A DNA stretch of 64,000 nucleotides from Dimorphilus gyrociliatus (taxonomy: Eukaryota; Animalia; Annelida). Both the position numbers and the translations under genes were made by a program. Of the stretch, positions 14,911 to 62,581 are shown piece by piece; the first letter of the stretch is position 1, and each line of letters opens with the position of its first letter. The notes under the pieces are model-generated. The model did no database searches. It saw nothing but the letters and a program-made list of their open reading frames with translations, and was not told the origin of the DNA. The DNA lies in assembly GCA_904063045.1 (NCBI GenBank), contig CAJFCJ010000006.1, positions 2,532,946 through 2,596,945 of the forward strand, read 5' to 3'.

Positions 14911-17900
14911 ATGAGTTATCCTAGAAATAGATATAGACATGAGACATATTCTGATGAAAAATATAGACGACCCAGGGCAAGGGATTTTTCGGATTCTGGA
15001 AGCAGTTCAAGAATTCAAACAGAATCTGTCGAACGAAAGAGAACGCAAGAAAGTGAAGGAAGAAGACGAGAGAGGAGGCAAAATTCTTACGTCCCATCAG
15101 TAAAAGGAAAAGTTACGGTGGTGCATAACACAAATTATGAAGGAACAAGAAAAAGAAGACGTCCAGAAACGAAAGAGGTTTGAATATAATTTTGAACTGA
15201 ACGATTCGATGCACATCAAAGGGTATTTCCTATGCATAAATATATTTATACATGTTATCAAATTCATAGGAAATGTGTGAAACATGGGCAACCAGAGCAG
15301 AGAAGAAGAAGCATCATATGTTGCGAAAGAGGTAGAAAAATTTTGCAATATTTGCCAAAAATTATCAACTTCCAAGAAGCATCTTGACTATCTAATATTG
15401 TTTTTTCATTTTTTTCAATAGCGGTAAAGAGCACCTATATGATGTTCCATGGGAGTATGGACATTACCGAGATACAAGCGAAGTCTTCCCAAGTCAGATG
15501 AATGAAAGACTGGATATAAGATCTAGACCCCCTTCTAGTAGAAGATCACGATCAATTTCTATACCAAGATCGGAAGCTAGACATTCCGAAAGAAGATCAT
15601 ATAAGGGTTATGAAGAAGATGGATATCCTAGAAATTCACATTGGGACGAAAAACCGTTATATGGCGATTTAGGTGAATATAAGAGAGACGGTCCAACCAG
15701 GACGGAATTAGAATATGGAAGAGGCTTTTTTCCTACTCGCAATCATAAAGCTAATTTGGGTGGAAACTATGATTGGGATAGGGACAGAGATAGAGATAGA
15801 GATAGAGATAGAGAAAGAGAAAGAGATAAAGAGCGTGACAGACAACGCGAAAGAGAAAGGGAATGGGAGCGGGAAAAGCAAAGAGAAAGGGAAAGAGAAA
15901 TAGAAAAAGATAGACTAAGGGAAAGAGATAGAGACAATCGAAATTCTTTTCAGAAATCTCGAAATAAGCAGCATTTATATAAATATAGACTGAGGAGAGA
16001 TAATTATTCGGACGATGAGGAAAATTCTACCTGGCGAAAGTGGAAAGCCGGAAGGTAAATCTATTTATTTGTTCATAGATCGTATTAATTTCTAATAAGA
16101 TATAACGAATGGTAGATATAACGATGAAGGAAAGGAAATTGATCCTTACGTTGATAAATCATCGAAAGCTAGAGGTTATCACAAGGAATGGCACAGAGCA
16201 GGAGAAATGCCTGTCTGGAAAGCTGGTCGCTTAGACAAGGATGAATTAAGATCTCATTTTGTTCGTCAAGAATCACTTTTATCTCAAAGAACTATACGAC
16301 TGTTGTCCTACCTATGTGAGCAGGGTTTGGCAGTGAGCCTAGATGATTTCAAGAAAACGATGCTTTATACCCAATATTTCGAAGAAGAAGATTTAGATAG
16401 TTATGTTAATTCTAATTCAACTTTTTTAAGTTTAATAGGTAAGAAACTTGTATCTAAAACCATTCAAGCTTGTTTAATTTACTTTTTATTTTACTTTGCT
16501 AGCATTTGACGAAAAGAAAGTTTTGAAGCTTTCATCAGATTTATCTATTTGTGATGAATATTATACAATTCAGGAATGTTCTAAAGAAAAGAATTGCCGG
16601 AATCTTCACATTTGTAAATTTTTTGTTCTCTCCCAATGTGTTTCAAAAGACAATTGCAATTATGGTCATAGTTTGACATCGCCCCATAATGAAAAAGTCT
16701 TACGACGACACTGTCTTATTGACCTCAGGCCTGAGTACATTAAAGTGATTGTAAAAAACAACAGGTAGCTAACTCTAGTCTTTTTTCTAAGGCTTTTCAA
16801 TTAGAAATATTTTATTTTAGATCGGCTGTTTGCTGGCCACGAGCTTGTTCATATTATAATACCAAACACGGGTGCCAATTTGATATTATAGGTGAAAGTT
16901 TAAAATGTACGTCTATGCATGTCTGCCTTGCGTATCTGCGTGAGGAATGTGATCAAGAAGAATGCCCTCGATCTCACAATATCTATGACGAGCAACCACG
17001 GAATATACTGACGAGATTTGGTTTTAATCCAAACGTAGATGAAGTTGAGCTTTTAGTAGAGTTGATGAATGCTCCGCACTTTTCAAAAATGTATTTTGAA
17101 CAACTTATGGAGAAATCTATAGAGGAAGATGAGGTAGAAGAAATTTCAAGAAAAAGAGCTGTTATTGAAAACGCTTTGGAAGCAGAGCTTCAACAAGAGC
17201 AAGAACTGCAACAAACTGCTCATTCTGCTAAATATATGGCTTTGAGAAAAAAATCGAAGTTTGCTATGACGAATTTTCTGCCTGCCTCAAATTATGTAAA
17301 CTGCATTTGATAAAATAATTTCTTTTACGAACTAATCATTTTTGTCTTTTAGGCTTTCTTCGAACCTGTGCAAAATCTACCATATCGCTTAACTGATACT
17401 CCATATATTTGGCAGTATGAAAAAAAAAATTGTTGGCATGATTTTGCTGAAGAAGAGTGCTTAAAACTTGAAGAGTATTACAGCGATCCGAAGAATGTTC
17501 AATGCTCCGCAAAAGCGATAAAAGTTGGAACAGTTGAAGTTGACTTTGAAGAATTTGTTTATTCCTCCAATATGTTTGCGTCTGGGTCTATTCGACGATT
17601 CTCTTTCGACTACAGTGGTTCAGCTGTTATCGATGGCCCAAGTTTAACAAAATGGCGATGGTACTATAACGCAGATAATACATGGGTAAAGTACGGGAAA
17701 TATCATGAAGGCTTGAAAATGGACATAACCCAAGAACAATTAGAAGAGTGTTATAGCAATGACAAGTTTAGTGTTGTAGAATTTTCAACGGAAGGGTTAG
17801 ATGGGGAGAGTCGTCAACTTTTCGAACTACAAATGGGCGAAATGAAACAATATAATTTGAAGACAGGCAAGGTATACTCAATTAGAAGAAGACCTATTTA

Positions 17901-18630
17901 TGATGATGGATCTAGAATACTAGTTGACAATGAAGAATATAGTGATGGAGATATGGAAACAGTTGAGCATGGAGAACAAGCACAACAAAGCTCAATAGAG
18001 AAAACTCTATGTTTTCTTCCAACTGATCCTGGACAGCAGCGAGATTTTTTGATACCTGTCAACAATAGAGAAATTCTTTCAAAGGGAGTTGAAGACAAGC
18101 CTGTATATAAAGGACAGCCAATATTATATACAAGCTCTTCAGCTGATAATCGAAATCCTACAGAGTCTGAACCAAAGAACTCAATGGAAAATTTAGAAAG
18201 AGAGGAGGAAACAACAAATGAAGCGACTAAACTTGAAGTAAAATTAAATGGTCGGGTTGAGTGTTCCGAGAATAAAGATATATCGAACGTGGAAATGTCA
18301 ACTATCGATCAGCAAAAAACGTCAGAGGTAGATGAAATTACAGAAAGCACGGAGATTACACATGTGGAAAAAGAAGAAACTAAAACGAATCAATCTCAAC
18401 TAGGTAATTTACCCGTCAAAAAAATTGACGATTACGGTATTGAAAAATTTGCAGATGAGTCGATTTCTGAAGCATATACCGCGATAGAGAGAACAGAAAA
18501 GGAAATCTGTGATGAAGACCTTGAAGCTATGAGATTATATGCTGAAGTCGAAAGAAGAGGATTGTTAGACAATTTAGAGAGGAAGGAAGATGTCCCTGGA
18601 AACATCGCAAGAAATGACGAAGAAACTTAG
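14911..18630 (+). CDS. CCCH zinc finger plus tandem WWE protein (PARP12/ZC3HAV1-like) with an RS/RD/RE-rich N-terminus and no PARP catalytic domain, about 1099 aa
   Basis: Exons 14911-15177, 15270-15331, 15422-16054, 16116-16438, 16503-16764, 16821-17295, 17353-18630 sum to 3300 nt in frame. Fingers CDEY..C..C..LHICKFF..C..C.YGH and CSYYN..C..C..HVC..C..C.RSH; WWE-like YIWQY..W and WRWYY..WVKY..KQYNLKTG..IRRRP. Confidence 0.75.
15775..15940 (+). repeat. Coding purine repeat (GATAGA/GAAAGA units) encoding a DR/ER mixed-charge tract
   Basis: Translates to WDRDRDRDRDRDRERERDKERDRQREREREWEREKQRE within exon 3 of the CCCH-WWE gene. Confidence 0.9.

Positions 18631-21318: not shown

Positions 21319-21362
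<44 letters not shown>
21319..21362. repeat. (AG)n microsatellite, about 22 units, followed by ATAG/ACAG units
   Basis: Read directly from sequence. Confidence 0.95.
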
Positions 21363-21367
<5 letters not shown>

Positions 21368-21761
21368 TAGACAGATAAACAGACCATTCAAAATGGTTTA
21401 TAATTGCAAGCAAATGATCATTATTAAATTTATAGATATATAATTTATAAAGTTATATAAAAACAAATTATAGGATAATATTTGAAATTAGTATGAATAT
21501 ACAGCATAGAAAGTATTAATAGAGATTAATAAAGTCTTTAATTAAAAGCATAGAATGTCAAATATGAATAAATTCAATTATGTAATAGTTTTTTTTTATT
21601 GTATAAGTTTTATAAAATAACAAACCCTTTTTTTATTAAAGAGCGAAAAAATTTTTATGATAAAATTGTTGCGCATCTGTTACACCAGTAAATGCGCCAT
21701 GTGCAGAAATAGTTAGACTAAAACTGAAATATCTCTACAGTAATATACTATCCATCTCATT

Positions 21762-24700
21762 ATGTGGCCTATTTACCCTTCAAGAAATATTACATATACA
21801 GATAAGCTTAGAGCTTTAAGAATATCATCGAATTTAACAACCATTGCTATTTTCTCAGAATGCAGCAATATCTGGAATATTCCGAAAAATCGTTTAGTTG
21901 CAAAGTACAATTTTAACTTACCGGAGGAGAGAAAATGGAATAAAACAGCAACTTTAATTGCCGGCTCAAATTTTGATGGAGTATATGAAGATAGGAGTGG
22001 AGTTAAGTCGCTTCCTTTTGAGAGTTTAGCCCCTTTTGCAGGTGTTGTTCTTATCAATTGCGGTGGAAATAATGATTATGAGAAGGCGAAAAATGTTAGC
22101 AAAGGAATAAAATGGTTATTAAGACAAGAGAGATATAGAAGATTTTTTTGCGAGATTATCCTAATTGAGCATGAATTTAGTGAATTTCACGATGAATTAT
22201 GGAAATCCCTAAACAATTTATACCCAAAAACAATTGTTTGTCCTGGTTTAGACTTTGGTAAGCATTCAAGCGAACAAAATCAATAGTGTTAATTCTAATA
22301 GAGTAGACATATACTGTATATACGCATATTTTATAAGTAGACCTAAGTTTAGACTATGTGCCTGGTTCACAAGCATGACTTATCAATGGTACCATGCTGG
22401 CAAACCATACGAAATAAAGAGTTTAACCAACAAAGCATGAATTAATAAATATGTATACATTGTATACATATTAAAAAAATAAAAATAATATAATAAACAA
22501 TATTTTTTTTATAAAAAAAAATATGTTCAAGAAAAGATATTTCTACTCTTCTCCTTCTCCAACTTCTTCATTTTTCTCATTTTCTTTGATATTTCCATAA
22601 CATATCCCAATTAGATTATCCGTCGAGTTACTCTGGCGTTACTACTGTAATTAATGAGGGATGTTCAAAAAATACTCCCAGAGATTGTCAGCCATTGAGT
22701 GTACATAATGTTCTTGCTCCTAAAGTAAGTTCCATAATACTTTGAAGGGTTTCTTCTAACAGATTATTTTGTTTCTAGCCACCATGCTGTTCAAAGAATG
22801 GAATTACTTTCATCACTAATAATGATAGTATAGCAGCTGCTACTATGGTGTCCCTTATGGCTTTAAGTTTAATAATGGCCGAAAAATATGGTACAAAATT
22901 ATTAATATTATCATCATATTTAAGGCCTAATCTCCTTTTTTTTAGGAAAGGGATGGATACCGAATTTCCTTGGAAGAAGAAGCGAAACAAGAAAGAAACT
23001 TTCGCATCCTTTCGTTCTCAGAAAGTTTATTAATAATTTACAAGTGAAATTCGGTCCTGGTATTAAACCACGTAATATTCTAAACCTAAATAAATCAGAG
23101 TTTATTGCCTGCCTTAACTCAACTTTTGAAAATATTGAAGGTAAAAAGTCCAATTTCCAATTTAATATGCAAATTAGTTTCAAGTATAAATATATTTTTT
23201 TTTCCAGTGTCCAATATTCAGGCAATTGATTTACCGCCAATACCAAACTATTTTTATTTACACAAGTTATTATCTGTCGAATCGAAGGAGAATATAATTA
23301 GATATGCCAAGTGTGATGAAGTGGAAATGTTATTCGAAATCGAAAAGAGCATTAAAAATGCATTTAAAATTCCAATAGAATGTTCTAAACAAAATCGACC
23401 AACGAACTGTTCGAAAGTTCTTGATTTACGTTTAATTGATGATTACGTTATTTGGGAAGACATTGCTATGAATGAAGCTGAAGATGATGATACTAAAAGT
23501 CTTAAAAAACGAAAGCAAGACTTTTTATTCGATTGTATTCGCTCAGTAGCGGCTAATTTAAAATGGGAGAAAATTGATGAAATTTTCCCGCCCTGTGCAG
23601 ATTTCTTGGAATACTTTCCATTACTTCGTAAATATGGAAATACCTTCTTCCTTCCGGAAACTTTCGATTTGAGCTCTTTAGCAAAACTATCATTAGATGT
23701 AGAAGAGCCAAAAATTTTCGTACTTCAACATTTGGTGCTATGCGAATGTGCGGAAGAAGATATAATGAAATTGTCCAAAATTAAACATATAACCTTCGAA
23801 GTGGAAAAAATTCAGTATAAAATTCGAACGGATTCGCCAAATTTTTTCGAATCTGTTCGATTGTTAGACGACCCAATTGTAGAGAGAACCCTTCTACTTA
23901 TTAACGAATCGAAATGTGACGATAGAGAAAAGTTTGTTAAAAGGGTTCAAACTTCGGTTTTAGCGAGATCAAAACCAATTATTAAATTAAGGATTAACGA
24001 TAAAGAAGAAAGTTCAAATGAGCTACGGAAATATCCAGAAGTTGATGTCAATTTTACCTATAATTGCGATATTAGGGCAAGAAGCGTTCGAAAATACTAC
24101 TCAATAGATGAAGATATATATCCAAAGTCTAACGTACATTTTGTATTGTTTTCCTCTGGAATTGATTGGATTCTAATCGACAAATTGAGATCTAGACGAT
24201 CAAATATTGGTGTTATTCGCGATAACGTGAACTTTATCGAGGATGAGGGGTTCGACAAAAACGTTGACGAATTTGGAATGAGTAGCGCCACCTGTCAACT
24301 ATTACTAAACTGTGGCGATGTTACATCATTAAAAGTCATCTCCAAAACTGGCAAAACATCTTTGGATTATTTTAAATTCGGAATGATTTGGTTGGAGAAG
24401 AATTTAGAAAAGATTAAACCCGATTTTATCATAATACCATTCAACGTACCAACGTTTGACTTTCAAATTGATAGAATTCTAAAGAATTTTGAAAAAAAAG
24501 GAATTATCACTCTAGTTTCGACTTCCGAAAATCAATGGGATTTCCCTTCATCATCAAGCAGCGTTATTGGAGTTGGTAAGTCTTTGTTGCTTATAAATTA
24601 AACTACTATTCCAAAGTTTTTTGAAATCATGAACAGGAGGTTTAGATTCAAATTTGAGGAAAACCCATACTTACAATACCGATATCCACGTTCTGAGCGA

Positions 24701-25107
24701 AAGTGTTAGAGGTAGATTTATGAAATAAGCATCTCTTTAGTACTCTCATTCACTTTTAACTCGTTTTAGTTCCATCTTACCTGAAACAAAATTCAATTTC
24801 TGGAAGCTCTGTCTCGGCTTGCGTCAGTGCTTGTTTACTAGCATACATATTGGTATCAGTTGGTTCGAAGTGGCGACCATACGTTCAAAATGTCGTCGTA
24901 TTGAAGAATTTCCTGAAAAAGTTGGAACAAGATGGAATTTTAAGAGTTGATAAAAAACATCTCAATTCTGTTATAAAAACTTGTGTTGGTTCCTGGAGGA
25001 AACGGAAGAGAATTCAACAATGCAAAAAGTTTAAATATGGATTAATTTGCATAAGTTTCATGGTGGTACTGGTTACCATTCTCTTTTCATATTTTAAAAT
25101 TTTTTGA
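21762..25107 (+). CDS. Protein with two degenerate subtilisin-like (S8) domains and a C-terminal transmembrane anchor, about 897 aa
   Basis: Exons 21762-22257, 22615-22724, 22779-22890, 22946-23140, 23208-24575, 24637-24711, 24770-25107 sum to 2694 nt in frame. S8-like scaffolds: TATLIAG..SLAPFAGVV..GIKWLL..YPSSY..VLAPK..DSIAAATMVSL and VLFSSGID..KV..GMIWL..GIITLVSTSEN..FPSS..VIGVGG..SGSSVSACVSACLLA. Terminal hydrophobic helix LICISFMVVLVTILFSYF. Confidence 0.7.
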
Positions 25108-25635
25108 ATGGAATGACTGGTTTTTCATTTTATTTTTTCAAATGATATGTAAATTAATTTAACATTTGGTTATGGTCTAATTATAATTAAGTTTTCTTCT
25201 AACTAACTGAAGGAGATTTCTAGATTCCCTTAAACAGTTTAAAAATATACATTACAGAAGAATTACTCATCTGTTTCTCCTCATATTCAAAAAGTCTTCA
25301 TCCATCTATCAGGATTATTAATCGTCATGGTGTAAAGACACAAGACAAGATGATTCTATCTAAACGGATTATGGGATAAAGCAACAGTTATAAAATCAAT
25401 ATGTTAACATCTCTTGTCAAATTCTTAATATAATAGATATTATAGTTTGTTTGTTCTTTTGTTAATTTAATATTAAACTATAAATCTTCAAAACCGTATA
25501 GTAAACACAAAAGATTTTCCATTATTTTTATCAAAATTTCAATTCATAAACACTCTCATCATAGTTCAGCAAGTAATAGTTTCCTTTGGCTGAACTGGAA
25601 CGAAAACTCTGTGAATCCAATATAGTTTATCAGCT

Positions 25636-25708
25636 GGTTTCATAGTGTAGTGGTTATCACGCTCGCTTTACACGCGAGAGGTCCTGAGTTCGATCCTCAG
25701 TGGAACCA
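25636..25708 (+). tRNA. tRNA-Val(TAC): tRNA-Val (anticodon TAC), copy 1
   Basis: GGTTTCA..TGGAACC acceptor stem, anticodon arm CTCGC-TTTACAC-GCGAG, T-loop GTTCGAT, A-box TAGTGTAGTGG, downstream T run (pol III terminator). Confidence 0.97.
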
Positions 25709-25872
25709 TAGTTTTTTTCCTGTTTTCTATTATGTTTCCATAAATTAGAGTATCATTAATAATGAATAACATTAGTTGGGTTTTTTCCCAATTCTCTACC
25801 TTCTGTTTTTCGTTTCTATGTCCGTCTACATTGGAAAAGAAACATAAGGGTGATTATAAGAGATTATCAGCA

Positions 25873-25945
25873 GGTTTCATAGTGTAGTGGTTATCACGCT
25901 CGCTTTACACGCGAGAGGTCCTGAGTTCGATCCTCAGTGGAACCA
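25873..25945 (+). tRNA. tRNA-Val(TAC): tRNA-Val (anticodon TAC), copy 2, identical to copy 1
   Basis: Same 73-nt sequence 237 nt downstream; T run follows. Confidence 0.97.
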
Positions 25946-38167: not shown

Positions 38168-39133
38168 CTAAATACTTAAAAAGCAGGCAATTATATATGC
38201 AATACCAAATTTTACATTATACATGGCCAATTTTTTAGGTAAAAATCTTAGGTCCTTTGCCCTAAATTCCTTTTCTACTCTAAAGACTTCGTAACAAGTA
38301 AGAACAGGAAGTATAAAAAAGACGCTCCTATGTATGACACAAAGCATCAGTACAACATGGGGAATGAACAAGAGAAAACAAAATAAAATATATGAGCCTG
38401 TCTCTCCAAGATAAATTGCAAGCGTGACTATTCCAGCAGCCCTATCAGTTTCCCTATCTCTTGTATTGTTTGCATGTAATATGGCTTCGGTGTTGAGAGC
38501 AAGGGGGATTGCGTAAATTAAGGTTGTAGTTGACAGTTGCCCACATTGAGTGAGGTAGGCAAACAAGACGGTTATAGGTCCAAATGTTAAAAATATGATA
38601 ATATCCCCCAGTGCAATATATTTGAGTCCCAGTCCTCCAGTATATAAAAAACTTGATGATAGGCCACCAAAGTAGATTAATGCCAAATGTTCGACTTCAG
38701 CTGGTGATATTATGCATAAAATTCCAAATCCAAAACACCCGAAAATATAAAATAAGCTACCCAATGTAGCAATATTATTTGGAGTGAGAATTTCGTCAAC
38801 CAGCGTTCTATCATCACTTTTCTTATTATCAACACCCCTCTTAAAATCAAAATAGGTATTAACCAGGTTACCAGCCGAATGAACACTCAAAGCAGTCAGA
38901 CAAGAACATAAATATATTAGTAAACTAAAATTCGATTCTATCTTATAAGATAGAACACTACCTAGTGATACTGGAATCAAACTGGCGCTTAAAGACCATG
39001 GTCTTAATGCTGCTATGTATTGTCGTAAGAAACTGTATGTTCCAACCGATCGTATTTTATGTTCTTTTTTACTTCTTTTGGAGAAATTTGAGTCTTTATC
39101 CATCTTGAAACAAGATTGCGATAATTCAACCAT
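38168..39133 (-). CDS. UBIAD1: UbiA prenyltransferase domain-containing protein 1 (single coding exon)
   Basis: ALRPWSLSASL, HSAGNLVNTYFDFKRGVDNKKSDDRTLVD, YTGGLGLKYIALGD, EAILHANNTRD..D. First in-frame ATG 39133 (the track's 39166 start is TTG). Confidence 0.96.
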   Translation of the reverse strand: MVELSQSCFKMDKDSNFSKRSKKEHKIRSVGTYSFLRQYIAALRPWSLSASLIPVSLGSVLSYKIESNFSLLIYLCSCLTALSVHSAGNLVNTYFDFKRGVDNKKSDDRTLVDEILTPNNIATLGSLFYIFGCFGFGILCIISPAEVEHLALIYFGGLSSSFLYTGGLGLKYIALGDIIIFLTFGPITVLFAYLTQCGQLSTTTLIYAIPLALNTEAILHANNTRDRETDRAAGIVTLAIYLGETGSYILFCFLLFIPHVVLMLCVIHRSVFFILPVLTCYEVFRVEKEFRAKDLRFLPKKLAMYNVKFGIAYIIACFLSI

Positions 39134-39258
39134 AGGAACACGTGTAGCAGACGGTACTCGAACCAATAGTATCGTGAATTAGAAGATTCGCTGGAGTTTT
39201 ATTCTTTTTAGAGTAGTATGGTTGCCTGTCTCTCGCTTAAATCTGGAACCAGTCAGCA

Positions 39259-47374: not shown

Positions 47375-49885
47375 TTAGATCTGTAGTGACGCTAAAGCGT
47401 AGGAGACGTCGTCAGGGCTAATTTGAAGACGAATTTTCGTGTTCATAAAATATCTTGGGGCAGATTTTGGATGCATTTCGATAAAGCCTACGCTATAGAG
47501 ACTCGATATCATCTTAACTAGACCATCCAAACCAGCGATCTTTACGCCATCCATTCTGCTTAATGTTTCATAGGTACTCTTCACTCTTTCCGATTGAACT
47601 TCGTCTATACCAGTTCGTTTCATTTCGGATATTATTGCTTGCATAATATAACGTTGATGAAGTGGGAGATGTCTTATGGCTGAAACGACTGGAGACGATA
47701 GAATATCTTCAAAAGCTCTTTCAACATCGCCTAAAGTCACTCTTTGACCATTAGCCAAAGAGCTAGCGTATTTACAAACGTGCAAAACTCTTCTTGCATC
47801 TCCTGAGAGTGACGCCACCTTTCTTGCGGCCAACTGAATAGCCTCTTCATCAAAATTTCTAACATCCTTCAAGTTTCTTTCAACAATGGTTTTGAGTTGT
47901 CGGAAATTGTACGGTTCAAAAGTCGTTCTAGTCAGGCCTAATCTAGACGATACTCTGGCACAAAGCACCTGCTCGGGTAAATCCATGGCATTAGCAACAG
48001 CAACAACGACTAATTTGGCGAATCTCCACGTTGGCCAATCAAATAAACTATATACAACATCTTGTTTTCGGTTGCAGAGCACATCAAGTTCGTCAACAAT
48101 TAAAACCGTTGGAAATCTTCGAGGGTTGGATATATTCCATCTACTGTCCAAAGCAGATTTGGCTTTCTTCCAAGTTGTCTTTTTGCCTCCCAATTGCTCC
48201 CATATAGCTACATAGGTCTGGTGAGGCTCTGTCAATTTTAGGGCATTTATATGCACCAAGTCAAACTTTGGAAGATCTTTGTCAGCTTTCAAATTAGCAA
48301 TAACTCTTTCTAAAGTAGCAGTTTTACCAGTTCCAGGAACTCCGGAGATGTACATACAGCCTCCCCCTGAAGAACTGGTTATGTGCGATTCAATCCAAGC
48401 TATAAGATCATCGAATTCTGTCTCTCTTCCAGGCAGAGGGCTTGTTTCTGCCAAAGACCCAAATGAACACCTTTTGGCTTTTAGCTCTTTATCTACTCTC
48501 TTTCGTCTTCCCGGTGTCTTAATCTTTGAGTTTGGAGAGCTATCCCAACCATCGCTGTCTTCATCTTCCTTATATAAAGTCTTTCTTACTTTGGAGCTGA
48601 CCTTTTTATCATCATTCTTCTCTATACGACGTCGGAAAGATGTTTTCTTGCTGGTTGACAGACAGTTTCTTTCGGAAATTCTCTTTTGAATTTTAGGAGT
48701 TATTGCAAAATCCTTATCCTCTTCATCATCAGATCCTTTTTTAGTTTTCTTGACTGATCTACTTGGGGTTTTTCTTAATTCTCTAATTTGTTCTTCCATT
48801 TTAATAGGACGTGTAGGAGTAATGTCTTCATCTGGTTCTAAAATTCTGCGTCCTTTAACTGGCGTTCTTAACGAGTCACTCCTTGCAACTTTCTTTCCTG
48901 TCGATAAGCATCTTCTTTCATCAGCAACAAGTCTTCTTCTAACCCGTTTACAAGGTGTTCTTTTTACTACTTCATCTTGACAGATATTTACGCTTAAATC
49001 GCTAAGTCTGATCTTCAACGGAGGTACTTTGTCGAATTTGGCTGCCTCTTTGATAGCCATATCGGCAGCTGTCTGCGAGTCGTAATATTGCTCTAATTGA
49101 CGTTCCGCAAGAATTCGAGCAACGCGTGGCCGCTTTCTTGGAGATTTAATTACCGTCTCCTCAGTGGAAGTTCGTTTTCTCTTTCTTGGTGAGAGCGGTT
49201 TCAAATAAGATCCTGGAAGGAGTGGCTTAATTTCTTTCATATCATACGATCGACAAACAAAGAATTGGTCACTATCGATATTGTCTACATTATTAGTTGA
49301 ATTTAATTCTCGAACCTGTACGAAATAAACTACGCGTCAGTTTTTTATCCAAATTGTTTGCTCATTCTGCTTTCTCACCTGACATTTAGAAAGAATAGTT
49401 TCAACATCAACATCATTATCTAAAACCCTATAATGATTCATTAAAATCTCATTATGAGATGGAACTTTCTTCTGCATCGCTTTGGATAATTCATGACGTC
49501 GCCAATACCATTGAATTACGGCTCGCTTGTTTTCGAGTTTGTCACCTACAGAAACTTGAGGTTACTTTGAATAGATAAATAAAATAGAATATCAACCATT
49601 ATCAAACAAATCCGAAATTCTTCCGATAAATGCTTTATCTACATTATCGGGCATGTCAGCATTATCAATGAAAACATAGTCTTTAACTCTGTAGATGACT
49701 CCATCAATTGACACGCTCCTGAAAAAGTATATATTATCGTCCAATAAAGGTTTGATTTGTAATAAAAATCAATGGACATACTGATAATGAATTCTTCCTG
49801 TATTTTCATCACACTTTGAATTTTCATCTATCCATTCTGCAACTTTTGAAGATCCAAATAGGTTTTTTGGAGCTTGATCGATCAT
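47375..49885 (-). CDS. ORC1: Origin recognition complex subunit 1 (BAH, basic linker, AAA+, winged helix)
   Basis: 5' exons encode BAH (YRVKDYVFIDN..AFIGRI); LPGRETEF, CMYISGVPGTGKTAT, VLIVDELDVL, ANAMDLPE, RVSSRLGLTR..FEPY, SGDARR. Confidence 0.97.
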
Positions 49886-56772: not shown

Positions 56773-59700
56773 TTAAACGGGTGGAGAAATATTTGTATTC
56801 GGAGCGTAAGGTGATAAAAGTTTTCTTGTATGTATTCGGAATCTTTTATTTGCCTCGTCCTGTCTCTCATCTAAGATGTATCGTGCGTAATCTCGATTCT
56901 CCTCCGTTTCCGGTATTGTCAATAAGGGCTTGTGGTCGATTGGTAAACGGCTATGCGATTGGCTGCTCGTTGCTAATACCTAATGAAAACAGATACAATT
57001 TGATACTCATCTTGTAAAAATAAACCCATTTTCTTTTACTATTACCTTAACTTTTTGGCTTCGACTAGGTGACGTCATTGGTCTTTGAGTAGGGGAGTTT
57101 TCGTTATTTTCTAAAGGAGTTTGATGCCAAGTTTTTGCTCTAGATAAAGTTTCACGATATTCAACGTCGAGGCGTTTTTTGCTATAATAAAAACAATTAA
57201 TTCTTTTAATTTTAATTATGAATAAATTTGAATATTGATTAGTTATATATCCAATAATAAGCTTCAGTAATTAGTACAATAAGGGGTGACAGTTGACATG
57301 CATAACAAAGCTAATCAAGCTAATAATGATTATGGAATATTTTGAGATTTCATGCTAAACTCACTGCAGAGCTCGTAAGTTCCTTTGACCTATGAAAATC
57401 CTCTTTTAATAAGATAATGGAATTCTATTTATCAATTTTTAAACGACTTTTGAGGATATCTTTGGTTTTTTTACACGTTTTTTTAATTTCTTTAAATCAA
57501 TGAACTTTCAATGATAAATTAGAAAAGTAAATATTTTATGGATATTTGAGAAGAGAAGAAGAAGAAGGAGAAAGAGAATAAAAAAAATAGATATATAGTT
57601 ACCGAAATGCCAATTTTATTTTCTCCTTCATTTCCTCGCTATTTTCCAAAACGCTGAGCCATGGGGTTGCCATTCTCATCTGATTTCTGGGTAGAATCAA
57701 CGGAGTGAGTGAAGGAAGACAAATATCATTGGTTGGGGAATGCTTTCTTAAGTGATGACCTCCTAGTAGATTAACATCCAATTTCCTTAGGAGGAGAGGA
57801 CTCTTTCCATTAGATAATGAAATAAATAATTGTAAGGTTGCATTTAACAATCGTTTATGCTTAAGCGTCGCGTGAAAATGTAATAGGGACGATATTTGGT
57901 GAAAGCCCATAACAGATAGGACAACTCTTGCAGATGGTTTCCTCCAAACTGCTGCTACAGTGGCATCAGTTACATAAAGTTGAATGTCCGTTGAATGTTT
58001 AGTTATAGCCAGCTGTTTCGTGTTAATTTTATAGATATATCTTATCAAAATTTCATTTAATCAAGATAAAAGAAAACCTTACCAAGTCGATAATATGAGA
58101 AATGCTATCTTGAGTAGCAGGAAAAAGCTCGTAGAGTGCTCGACATAATTTTGGACTATTTCTTATGTCGAGACAAGCTCTTAGAGCATCATATACCGGA
58201 AGCAATAAAACTTCGTTATCGTTGTAAGGAAATACAACAAATGGTTCGGAGAGAACGCCGTCTTTGGCCTGAAAACGAAAACCTAAAGATCTGAGTATGA
58301 GAAGAGCTTGAACGTTCGAGGCAAGATTGTCATTTAACATTATAGTCTGACTAATCGGCATATGATTATTTAGACGTTTTATCGACATATCGAGCTGTTA
58401 GAAATAAAGTTAATAATCATAATTAATAAGATAAAAGATTAAACTATAAATTAGTCTAACCAAATCAACAAGATGTGGTAAGACTTCCGGTTGTTGATCA
58501 TTTCGAACCAAAAGCGATGATAAATTATTCATAAGCTCCTCTAGAATATATTCTCTGCTTTTCTCTATTACAAGTAAATTATATATTAAATAAACAAAAC
58601 ACTTTAAATCTTATCTTATACTCCACCAGTTGGCGTTAGCGGTGACGGATTTAACGGATCCCAATTATATTCTTCTTTAAATTTATCTTCAGCCTTATCA
58701 ATTAATTGATCTAATTGGCAATGCTTTATTTCTTGTAGGTTAACAAAAGCATCTTTTCCTAATAGAATAAACGAGGCCCAATTTGATTTTCCTTCAAATC
58801 TGATAAATAATTTATAACCTTTCATTTTTAATTTAAAGAAATGTTAATTAAATAAAATCTAACCCTTCTAATTTACTAATTTTATCAGAAGCAGTTCTAA
58901 TCGCATCGCTAACCAAGCAACCTTTTAACAATACCGTATAGAATTCTTTATAGAATAACAATAAGACTTCATTCGGAATTGGCCAAAGTGATGTTACAAC
59001 GCACTGTGCTCCTGCACTTAAGAATGAACAAGCTAAATTAAAATTTGGTTCAATTTCATCTCTTCTTCTTTCGCTCCAAGCGGAACTGAGGACAACTAGA
59101 CTGCAATTGCAAGGCATCGATGCAATGTCGTCAGTTGTTACGATATATGAATTCTTTTGTAGAGGTTGTTCGTGGGTCAATTCGGGATCTGGTGAGAATA
59201 CCAGTAAACCTTCGGAATTGCATCCTAAAGTTGCTGTCAATAGAGAAATCATTAATCGATTAATAAAAAAAAGGCAATTTATTTTCTATTCCTTACAGAT
59301 ATGTAGTATTGTACTATTTCTCATACAGTAGAAGAACATAGCTCTGTTAGCTTCCGCTCCAACCCAGGGTTTTACTGCTAATAAATCGGAAACTGCAAAA
59401 CATTCTTTTTGCATAGCTTTTGTACAAGAGTTTAATTTCATTTTCTTTTCGTACAGTATTACTTCACCAATTTTTGGACAGCCTATCACGTGACACTTAT
59501 CTTGTTGACTTATTTGTTTAAATTCCGGAATTTGTACATCTGAAGTAACTATATCAGTGTTTGTATGGGTTTTTAGTGTCAAAGTATTTAATGTGTTTAT
59601 GCCAGTTATTCTCTCAATTGGAAGGACACTTCTAACAAGACTAATGGCAGTAGATTCTCTAGAAAGGGATTGTTTGCCAGACCTTCCCCCAGCTCTAGAT

Positions 59701-62581
59701 GTCAATAATCTAGGATTCGATGTTTGCCTCAGGTTCATCGTGGGGGTAGATGCCATTAGTGTATCATTTAAATTTCTTTTCGCTGTTTTTGTAATATGTT
59801 TTATGCATCCTCCGTCCCTTGCCTTTTTCCTATTCCACTTTAGCTCATCCTTTACAGCGGCTATTTCTAAGTCAGAGTAGATTGTTCTCTCTAAGAAAGC
59901 TAAACTGGGAAGTAAGGTAATGTTATATTTCTTTCCAAGTCTTTCGTTCTTAACATTCTCTAAAAACGTCCATGGAACATGATATAATATTGATTCTGGA
60001 ATAATGACTAGAGAGGTTATATCTTCTAACATATAAACAATAGGAGATATGAGAAGATCGTAAAGTTCCCTCAAGGCTGGTTTCTTTCGTAATTGTTCGT
60101 ATTCTTTTCTGATATGCTCTAAAGATGATTTTACAATTAATTCCGATTCGACTTGAGCATATTTAACAATTCTTTCATCAATCTTCTTTTTCTTTTTTCT
60201 CTTCTTTAATCTTTTCTTTTCAACTAGGATCTCGCAACTAGACGTTGAATCTTTCCTATCCGATTCTGAATTATACGAAACCTTTTTACCATCAATCGTA
60301 AAGCTAAGGGGAAACGTTTGTTGAATTAGGATGTCGGCACTATTCAATTCATTCCTAAAAAACTCTTCAGAGGCTATTGAACTTGTTCTATTAGTTATTA
60401 AGGAAGACTTTCTACTTTCTGTTGTCAGCTTCTTTTCATTCAATTTTCCGAATTGTTCTCGAATGTAAGTCAAATCTGCATCCTTTCTAGGCAGACTACG
60501 ATTTTCAACAGTGTAAGAATTATTTCTTTTTACACCGTCGTTCTTTATTTCATTGATTAAATTAAGTAGTCTCGTCGACATAGTCTCCTTCTCATAGGAT
60601 TTTCTAGAAAAGAACTTTACGAGACCCTTCCTCGGTTGTAAGATCCAAAGGTAATACTCATTTTCTCTAATGGTATAAAAGAGAATTGTAGATTTTTGCA
60701 GATTAACAGCCCTTTGAATTCGTTCGAAATTCCATTGAATTCCCATAGCTGGTAGTATCGGATTAGAAGGTTGTGCCCTTTGTAATTCTGCAGAGCAGAG
60801 AGCTTCCTCGAAACTACATAGCTTGTTAAGAACATCCAATTGACAGGCAAAACAGGTATTTAATTCCATGCGTAATTCTTCCGGACAAAAGGTTCTTTCT
60901 ACTTGATGTTGTTTAATCTTACTCTCGAGGATGGGTATAATATTTGAAAATAAAGAACGAGCCCTGTCTAAATCATTCGCCGAACGGCTTGAAGCTAGAA
61001 TACATGCAGATTTAACGTCGCAAGCTAACATTATATCTTGCATATCTTCTACTTTTGTAAAATCAGCAGAAGAGGCTCTATCCAGATGGAAGAGTGCTCT
61101 TTCATTCTTTCCATTTTCAGCGTATACCTTACCTATAATAAATATACAAGATAATATAATATAAACAAAAAAAAACTATCCATTGTATATTTATTTATCT
61201 TAATATAATTTTACCAATTTTATAGGCTGATATCACGCTATTTCTACCCTTTTTCGACATCATTTGATAACATTCAACAGCTTTATCGACGTCTTTCAAT
61301 TGGGCATAAGCGTCTCCAAGACTTTCGTAAATATCTGATTTTTCAGTGTCAGAAACGAAATTTAATAGAATTTCCAATTGTTCCAAGTAGACCAAAGCTA
61401 AATTTGGATGGTTTAATGAAGCATAAACGCTTGCAAGACAAGAGTAGCCTGTTAAAAAGTTATATAGATAAATTATGCTAATTAATATTTATTAGTTTTC
61501 ATCAACCTCGAGATAGCTGGTTCGGAATTCTTTTACATGATCTTAAATAGGTTTTGAAATGCTCCAGGGCATTGATTAAATCTCCATTGAGACTGCAAAT
61601 TATACCAAGGTTTAAATGACTTTTGGCTTCTTCAATATTACCGTGTTTTTCTGCTAATACCATATAGAGTTTGGCATGATGTTTGGCTTTATCTAGTAAA
61701 CCAACAGCTTTATAGGCCAACGACAAATTTAGATGAAGCGCACAAACGAATTTTGGATCATGATCCTGTTCCAAATCCGCTAATTTCTCATAAGCGACTA
61801 TAGCTTTGTGAGTAAATCCAAGTTCTAAGAATATGGAGGCTGACCCTATTAAGGATTTACTTTGATAATTTTCATCATGGCACGATAGTGCAACAGCTTC
61901 ACAATGTTCGTAAATTTCAACTGCAGCCGTTAAATCACCTAATTTCGCTTTTAAATTAGCCAAGGTTAATAGAATTCTCATTCGTATTCCAATAGTAGGA
62001 CTATTAACTTGTAAATTGTTGGCTACTTCCAGGATAGCCTGAGCTTCTTGAATATATTTACTTTTAGCTAAAATACAACCAACTTCTGCAAGTCTGGCTG
62101 GCGCTTCTAAACTTAATAATACTTCATCGTCAACTAATTTTGAAACAAGATTAGCCAGTGATAAGGATAAAGAATCAATATTTTGAAACCCATTTTCTAA
62201 AGATATTGTAAAGTATGATAAACTCTTCTCATAATCGTCCAAGTGAAAATTTATAATCCCTTTCAAATAATAACATTTTGGATTTAATTTCTGAACTTTT
62301 AATACTTTGTCTAAATCTTCATCAGCCTCTCTATATAGACCTAATTGGACATTACAAGCAGCTCTAGAGTAGATTATTTCAACATTATTTTCATCAATTT
62401 CTAAAGCTTCGTTAAATTTATCTGATGCAAGTTTAAAATCTCCCTTTAGAAAGGCTTTTTCACCCTTTGATTTAAGCTTTTTAACGGTTTTAATTTCTTC
62501 TGCTTCGGATAATATTGAAGTAACTTCTGCAGTGTGTGGAAGCGACATTGATGAAAGTTTATGGGAAAGTTGAAAATCCAT
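56773..62581 (-). CDS. TTC28: TTC28-like TPR plus CHAT-domain protein
   Basis: N-terminal TPRs (GEKAFLKGDF.LA..FNEAL; HLNLGIIC..GDL..ALEHF); CHAT-like LRELYDLLISPI..LVIIP...LYHVPW, CSLVVLSS..LACSFLSAGAQCVVTSLWP..W..F.LLG; TTC28-type distal block (AL.ILR.LGFRFQ). Last exon stops at 56773; the start may extend to 62702 via a micro first exon. Confidence 0.82.

Follow-up and report, generated by a model that had tools for sequence, protein, structure and literature searches.

Protease-fold pseudoenzymes such as the iRhoms, cFLIP and CspC have repeatedly proved to be regulators rather than enzymes. Among animal proteins, PCSK9 contains a subtilase domain that acts purely as a binding module after self-cleavage, and it shares its S8 ancestry with PCSK/furin, MBTPS1 and TPP2. 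PCSKs and MBTPS1 use a signal peptide to enter the secretory pathway, and TPP2 forms a soluble giant complex. To our knowledge, animal subtilases are represented only by the secretory-pathway convertases, MBTPS1 and TPP2, and Pfam recognises PCSK9, PCSK/furin, MBTPS1 and TPP2, each of which has an intact triad; we know of none that is tail-anchored or tandem. In Clostridioides difficile, the fusion CspBA combines the catalytically dead subtilase CspA with an active CspB, CspC is also dead, and CspC and CspA constitute a heterodimeric signal sensor (PMC7200643, PMC12880746). The Plasmodium protein PIMMS2 represents a pseudoenzyme of the subtilisin-like type, whose S8-like domain is devoid of the HGT and GTS motifs and functions independently of a triad (PMC5520436). 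Here, we describe a gene of the annelid Dimorphilus gyrociliatus that lies at positions 21762-25107 (+ strand) of a 64,000-nt stretch of contig CAJFCJ010000006.1 (hereafter the window; G+C content 31.7%), and which, on balance, we take to encode a tail-anchored tandem pseudo-subtilase of 897 residues.

How does this locus compare with the described systems? The predicted protein would be composed of a first S8-like unit (unit 1, residues 1-292), a conserved middle domain of about 300 residues (residues 305-600), a second S8-like unit (unit 2, residues 601-850), a basic stretch and a C-terminal helix (residues 876-894). We envision that an ancestral S8 domain was duplicated internally, and that both copies lack the catalytic Asp and His and keep the Ser (S219 and S799). 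The Csp proteins resemble this arrangement in that they contain S8 domains in which catalytic residues are substituted and which serve in binding and signalling rather than cutting (PMC7200643, PMC12880746), in that CspBA carries two S8 domains on one polypeptide, and in that CspC:CspA brings two dead S8 domains together as a pair. However, the Csp proteins occur in bacteria, as soluble spore proteins that have prodomains, and CspBA retains one active domain, whereas here both domains are predicted to be dead and to be separated by a 300-residue domain, in a protein probably tail-anchored in an animal cell; beyond the S8 superfamily, no sequence relationship is detectable. PIMMS2 is likewise eukaryotic and membrane-associated, with an S8-like domain that does not need a triad (PMC5520436), but it has a signal peptide, surface exposure, a mid-protein transmembrane (TM) segment and a single S8 domain that is seen by standard tools. 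A preliminary description of the locus had called the protein undescribed. This appears apt for the animal, cytosolic, tail-anchored and doubly dead arrangement: full-text literature searches brought up no relevant work on tail-anchored subtilases, and no animal protein of such design turned up. It is too broad for the pseudo-subtilase principle, which is known from CspA/CspC and PIMMS2.

The gene is genuine, expressed and strongly constrained. When GT/AG sites compatible with one continuous open frame were enumerated, the best model had seven exons, an 897-residue product and six introns, all of them GT-AG. A single spliced contig of 2978 nt (run X2, depth 148) spans 21669-25298 and has the six introns removed at the exact predicted junctions. 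The library type of run X2 is not on record, and we count this contig as RNA because a spliced copy can only arise from RNA. An independent metatranscriptome from coral (X1, RNA on record) likewise has contigs that lack introns 1, 3 and 5. The exon junctions of the preliminary description, which had named RNA sequencing as the appropriate check, are thus all found in one X2 contig, and three of them again in X1. Within the mRNA, an in-frame TAA at 21741 precedes the ATG at 21762; the N-terminus is therefore complete and carries no signal peptide. The parts of the transcript are the following.

21669..21761, + strand: 5' untranslated region (UTR); the 5' limit is the reach of the transcript contig
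21762..22257, + strand: exon 1, residues 1-165; start codon and N-terminal two thirds of unit 1, in which F31/S32 mark the Asp site and W59 the His site
22615..22724, + strand: exon 2, residues 166-202; unit 1 segments DYPSSYSGVTTV and VLAPK
22779..22890, + strand: exon 3, residues 203-239; unit 1 Ser-site helix (NDSIAAATMV...), S219 codon at 22827-22829
22946..23140, + strand: exon 4, residues 240-304; last helix of unit 1 (HPFVLRKFINNL) and linker
23208..24575, + strand: exon 5, residues 305-760; middle domain (residues 305-600, 23140-24094), then from 24095 the first two thirds of unit 2, whose Asp, His and Asn sites hold S620, F660/M662 and E745-N746, respectively
24637..24711, + strand: exon 6, residues 761-785; unit 2 segment GLDSN...HVLSESVR
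24770..25107, + strand: exon 7, residues 786-897 and stop; unit 2 Ser-site helix, S799 codon at 24808-24810, and last S8 helix
24988-25038, + strand: basic stretch within exon 7
25039-25095, + strand: predicted tail-anchor helix within exon 7, residues 876-894
25108..25298, + strand: 3' UTR; the 3' limit is the reach of the transcript contig

Two overlapping tiny upstream open reading frames (ORFs) of 6 and 5 codons (21692-21712 and 21699-21716, + strand) are located in the 5' UTR. An (AG)21 microsatellite at 21321-21362, some 300 bp upstream of the first base observed in the transcript, explains the SLSLSL/RERERE ORFs found there. Other X2 contigs overlap partly with the A/T-rich intron 1 (22286-22547) and continue into dissimilar sequence, their loose ends lying at 22424 and 22522; these matches probably represent a dispersed repeat or low complexity.

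Among 1.84 billion representative proteins, the sole relative of the large exon found by phmmer was P0001 (77% identity), and a word-indexed search with the S8-like part at E values up to 10 returned P0001 again and nothing else. P0001 maps to a genomic contig of 4.3 kb from a different sample (L001) and belongs to a second species; the exons on this contig share 72-83% DNA identity with the window, and the introns are unalignable. The rebuilt orthologue comprises 896 residues (78% identical) in seven exons as here, with its frame intact. The ratio of nonsynonymous to synonymous substitution rates (dN/dS; Nei-Gojobori, two species, dS saturated) is about 0.06 overall and 0.05 in unit 1. Unit 1 is the best-conserved region between the two species, and its Ser-site helix (residues 211-240) has 100% identity in the orthologue. 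No paralogue was found elsewhere within the window. The gene is lineage-restricted, with two species so far.

The assignment of unit 2 to peptidase family S8 relies on comparisons with a reference set of six plasmid genes annotated as S8 and checked with Pfam, together with 120 S8 proteins of the intracellular serine protease (ISP) type. The hhalign queries were two-species alignments of the individual spliced units (residues 590-860 for unit 2), and the S8 profile was made of 46 Pfam-verified sequences. Unit 2 matched this profile with a score of 38.9 (P=6.8e-5, 169 columns), whereas the maximum among 40 column shuffles was 23.4 and the reversed sequence scored 10.9. A global alignment covered 246 columns (P=1.5e-4) and was in register at the KVl..G, W, YP..vI.VGa, APG and SGTSMA segments. 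The unit 2 segments pair with those of the S8 profile as listed here.

SLKVISKTGK with lKVl..GsG
GMIWL with aI.wA
DFIIIPFN with vIsMSLGG
GIITLVSTS with dIlvVcAAG
DFPSSSSSVIGVGGLD with YP.aY.eVv.VGAvD
HVLSESVRVPS with DLvAPG..IlS
ISGSSVSACVSACLLAY with lSGTSMAtPHVsGaaAL
DGILRV with GnGll.l

Consistently, an S8 hidden Markov model (HMM) gave 9.3 and 4.3 bits on unit 2 of the two species, compared with a shuffle maximum of 3.7 (0 of 300 shuffles as high). Exon-level pieces of unit 2 without the last third matched S8 in hhalign with P=0.0026 and an unchanged register. In a protein-language-model search with exon 5, 25 of the 30 nearest clusters were Peptidase_S8 at a score of 0.95, with few shared features, as expected of a distant relative. 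Searches of phages and plasmids by tblastn with pieces of unit 2 produced chance-level matches, and none for the Ser-helix piece; the global mode of hhalign on trimmed units produced uninformative end-overlaps. Taken together, the profile match with its shuffle controls, the HMM scores and the language-model neighbours suggest that unit 2 is derived from S8, in line with the preliminary description, the unit 2 motifs of which were all recovered in the given order (VLFSSGID at residue 617, DEFGMSSATC at 658, GMIWL at 696, VSTSEN at 741 and SGSSVSAC at 796). The best profile match to unit 2 came from the Bacillus-type ISPs, likewise cytosolic S8 domains that lack a signal peptide. ISPs differ from unit 2 in being active enzymes of about 320 residues with invariant D, H, N and S, and share 14-17% identity with it; the quality of this match may reflect the construction of the profile and not ancestry.

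Unit 1 resembles unit 2 (hhalign score 26.0, P=0.006; shuffle maximum 17.4). When the unit 2 profile was extended by the rows of unit 1, the score against S8 rose from 38.9 to 49.0 (P=2.4e-6, probability 89%). By contrast, 25 sets of shuffled unit 1 rows scored 14-41.3 and rows from the middle domain 31.9, none of them reaching 49.0; the middle-domain rows and 24 of the 25 shuffled sets even brought the score below 38.9. The best local S8 matches of three pieces of unit 1 were moreover collinear (32-54 with 36-58, 102-187 with 123-217, and 253-270 with 272-289). These comparisons argue that both units descend from one S8 domain by internal duplication, as had been proposed, and that unit 1 is the more diverged yet more strongly constrained copy of unit 2. 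The motifs quoted previously for unit 1 likewise occur in the given order (IAIFSEC at residue 28, WNKTATLIAG at 59, SLAPFA at 88, GIKWLL at 115, YPSSY at 167, VLAPK at 198 and NDSIAA at 217). A similar helix had been noted after each unit; it corresponds to the last helix of the S8 domain itself and not to an extra element. Intron 2 (22724/22779, after VLAPK, phase 0) and intron 6 (24711/24770, after LSESVR, phase 1) occupy equivalent places, matching in the alignment of the two units to within a 3-residue gap, though their phases differ; they may represent one intron that predates the duplication.

What has become of the catalytic residues? The S8 triad has the order Asp-His-Ser, of which the Ser alone is kept in both species. 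The positions equivalent to the S8 catalytic residues are occupied as follows.

Asp position: unit 1, most likely F31, with S32 next; unit 2, S620
His position: unit 1, W59; unit 2, F660 or M662
Oxyanion Asn position: unit 1, column falls in a gap; unit 2, E745 (Asp in the orthologue), with N746 next
Nucleophile Ser position: unit 1, S219; unit 2, S799

Neither catalytic segment of either unit contains an Asp or a His in any register, and the orthologue agrees; a classical Asp-His-Ser triad is therefore impossible. The claim that the Asp and His equivalents are replaced in both units thus stands, as does the placement of the unit 2 nucleophile at about 24808. The more specific claim of an Asp-to-Ser exchange in both units holds for unit 2 (S620) and fails for unit 1, where the Asp column most likely holds F31 and S32 comes one later. 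Similarly, the oxyanion Asn had been described as kept in unit 2; its column holds E745 and an Asn follows one residue on, so that this assignment is uncertain by one residue.

The tail anchor is suggested by hydrophobicity. The sole strong hydrophobic 19-residue window is formed by residues 876-894 (Kyte-Doolittle value of 2.44, against 2.93 for the orthologue). A basic run (WRKRKRIQQCKKFKY) comes before it; after it come three residues (KIF) and then the stop, the orthologue having two residues there. In the scan, the two next-highest peaks fall on the buried Ser-site helices, first that of unit 2 and then that of unit 1, a further sign of the equivalence of the units. The first 25 residues contain no hydrophobic stretch, as judged by the hydrophobicity scan and not by a dedicated signal-peptide predictor. 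A C-terminal TM helix without a signal peptide defines a tail-anchored protein with a cytosolic bulk, and the present protein has one predicted TM helix within about 30 residues of its C-terminus and no other. All three elements of the topology put forward in the preliminary description, namely the lack of a signal peptide (upstream stop in the mRNA, N-terminus not hydrophobic), the TM helix at the extreme C-terminus (the only strong window in both species) and the resulting tail-anchor topology, are consistent with these data. Accordingly oriented, nearly the whole protein is predicted to face the cytosol. The endoplasmic reticulum (ER) would most likely be the target membrane, being favoured because the anchor is very hydrophobic. 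A glycosylphosphatidylinositol anchor was considered and rejected, given the missing signal peptide and the basic flank.

The middle domain (residues 305-600) showed no match to S8, to five S8 prodomains (P=0.39), to unit 1 or to unit 2. Its language-model neighbours were S8 prodomain families (0.81-0.87), a weak lead. Measured against the Csp proteins, which retain prodomains, the present protein offers substituted triads and these weak prodomain leads (0.81-0.87, with a profile P of 0.39). Within the middle domain, the block of residues 391-420 (about 23466-23555) is identical between the two species at 29 of 30 residues (97%); it consists of an acidic run followed by KKRK, plus a conserved hydrophobic stretch.

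Several results weigh against a tandem pseudo-subtilase. The exon products yielded no PF00082 match in Pfam at E values up to 10, a search made less sensitive by the splitting of both domains between exons; scanned with NCBIfam and PADLOC, they likewise yielded no S8, nor did phmmer and hmmsearch against PDB sequences. Structure prediction with AlphaFold2 used exon-sized references, so that exon-sized pieces alone were folded. Its models had low confidence because homologues are too few, with a mean predicted local distance difference test value (pLDDT) of 32 for exon 5 and its orthologue (two rows), and a pLDDT of 45.5 and a predicted template modelling score of 0.46 for the four-row unit alignment. 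With the four-row model, subtilases made up 24 of the 50 best Foldseek rows, none of them significant (E of at least 0.1), and VIA-align returned nothing specific. The retention of the serines, known from two species, could be due to chance. Finally, unit 1 alone did not match the S8 profile significantly (P about 0.1), and its S8 HMM score was equalled by 8 and 20 of 300 shuffles in the two species. Conceivably, then, only unit 2 might be derived from a subtilase, with unit 1 being an unrelated alpha/beta domain that is similar by chance or composition. The language-model search of exon 1, which found no family above 0.81, and the P values of 0.17-0.29 for sub-pieces of unit 1 against S8 would fit this possibility. 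We nevertheless consider it unlikely, given that unit 1 surpassed every shuffle in the comparison with unit 2, that its true rows lifted the S8 score to a level of which all 25 shuffled controls fell short, and that its three pieces matched S8 in the correct order. A more radical alternative holds that the units are Rossmann-type domains similar to short-chain dehydrogenases (SDRs), and that the S8 motifs are a coincidence between two alpha/beta folds. SDR oxidoreductases were indeed the top tblastn matches for unit 2 in 7.3 Gb of plasmids (E=0.1, 33% over 117 residues), SSGI looks like the glycine-rich loop of SDRs and, also to the detriment of an S8 origin, pairwise blastp gave 43.9 bits to an SDR versus 37.4 to the best single S8 protein. 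However, an E value of 0.1 is chance level for a search of a whole database, and in the orthologue the SDR score (28.9 bits) is under that of S8 (30.4). An SDR profile built from 40 relatives gave P=0.011 over 93 columns, compared with 6.8e-5 over 169 columns for S8, and addition of the unit 1 rows worsened the SDR match to P=0.088 while it improved the S8 match. An SDR origin would also give no account of the C-terminal third, in which the SGSSVSA helix pairs with GTSMA; the neighbours in the language-model search are S8 and not SDR, and the exon products have no Pfam SDR match. We thus rejected SDR ancestry, which we regard as highly improbable, as a local coincidence of NCGDVTSLKVISKTGKTSLDYF with NCAGV..KVIDRDGKA.SLD.F. 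The chance likeness to one bacterial SDR oxidoreductase subfamily is confined to 24230-24400 (residues 646-702), amounts to 44 bits pairwise and is gone at the profile level; it constitutes a trap for annotation by BLAST only.

Supposing that both units are subtilase-derived, could the protein still be a hydrolase, with S219 and/or S799 working alongside a non-canonical or repositioned acid and base, as in the sedolisins? Sedolisins (S53) employ Ser-Glu-Asp catalysis, the acidic E745 in the oxyanion column of unit 2 (Asp in the orthologue) is reminiscent of their Asp, and both nucleophile-position serines are kept in the two species. Conservation in two species at 78% identity, however, cannot single out serines, His and Asp are absent from both catalytic segments of each unit, and PFNV or EHEF replaces the SLGG substrate-binding strand. 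A sedolisin-type triad was rejected for lack of an E-x-x-x-D on the His-site helix, which reads DEFGMSS here and DDFGMSS in the orthologue. Residual hydrolase activity thus appears quite improbable, somewhat more so than an unrelated origin of unit 1. There is virtually no room for the notion that the model joins exons of separate transcripts or that the DNA is a contaminant. Nothing was found in its favour, the sole possible hint being that protein collections hold no annotated full-length protein, and it is refuted by the spliced contig that joins all seven exons at GT-AG sites. The recurrence of three junctions in RNA contigs of a second study, an orthologous locus with alignable exons and unalignable introns, and the dN/dS of 0.06 speak against it as well. 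The earlier view of a real eukaryotic gene with one transcript, and not contamination, is therefore upheld by this contig and by an orthologue that shares its intron positions.

How might a tail-anchored tandem pseudo-subtilase act? We envision a module that serves in binding or scaffolding without catalysis, that is held on the cytosolic side of an organelle membrane, and in which the two dead domains may pack together as the dead subtilases CspC and CspA do. Such a protein probably binds partners rather than digests them; our confidence in any function is much lower than that in the architecture. By analogy with CspC:CspA, an intramolecular pair of dead domains combined with the invariant middle domain might even form an organelle-tethered cytosolic sensor, which would be an animal invention or a gene captured from bacteria, confined to a single group of small marine worms. 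We consider this extension doubtful. The target of such a sensor could be a small molecule, a peptide, or a protease or inhibitor of a pathogen.

Other features of the window include two tRNA-Val(TAC) genes with identical scores, 238 bp apart (25635-25709 and 25873-25945, + strand), located about 530 nt 3' of the pseudo-subtilase stop codon and about 340 nt past the last transcript contig. The upstream neighbour (17368-18630, + strand) contains two WWE domains. On the - strand, an ORF at 38168-39166 has a UbiA prenyltransferase domain, and a single-exon ORF of 621 residues (47375-49240) has AAA, lid and Cdc6 C-terminal winged-helix domains and is therefore a Cdc6/Orc1-type replication factor. 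Also on the - strand, a long ORF that encodes a CHAT protease-like domain adjoins an ORF with a TPR array (59286-61043 and 61502-62581); the two are probably one TPR-CHAT gene, of a type found in cell-death and immune-like modules.

If correct, our interpretation would add a new architecture to the animal subtilases, one that is cytosol-facing, tail-anchored and endowed with two dead domains. Its reach is limited by a narrow distribution, with the gene seen in two species so far. It would nonetheless exemplify an internal duplication that occurred after or alongside catalytic loss and that is maintained under strong purifying selection. Curated domain libraries miss the gene entirely, and similar relics may thus be under-counted. 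For pseudoenzyme research, the protein would provide a testable animal case.

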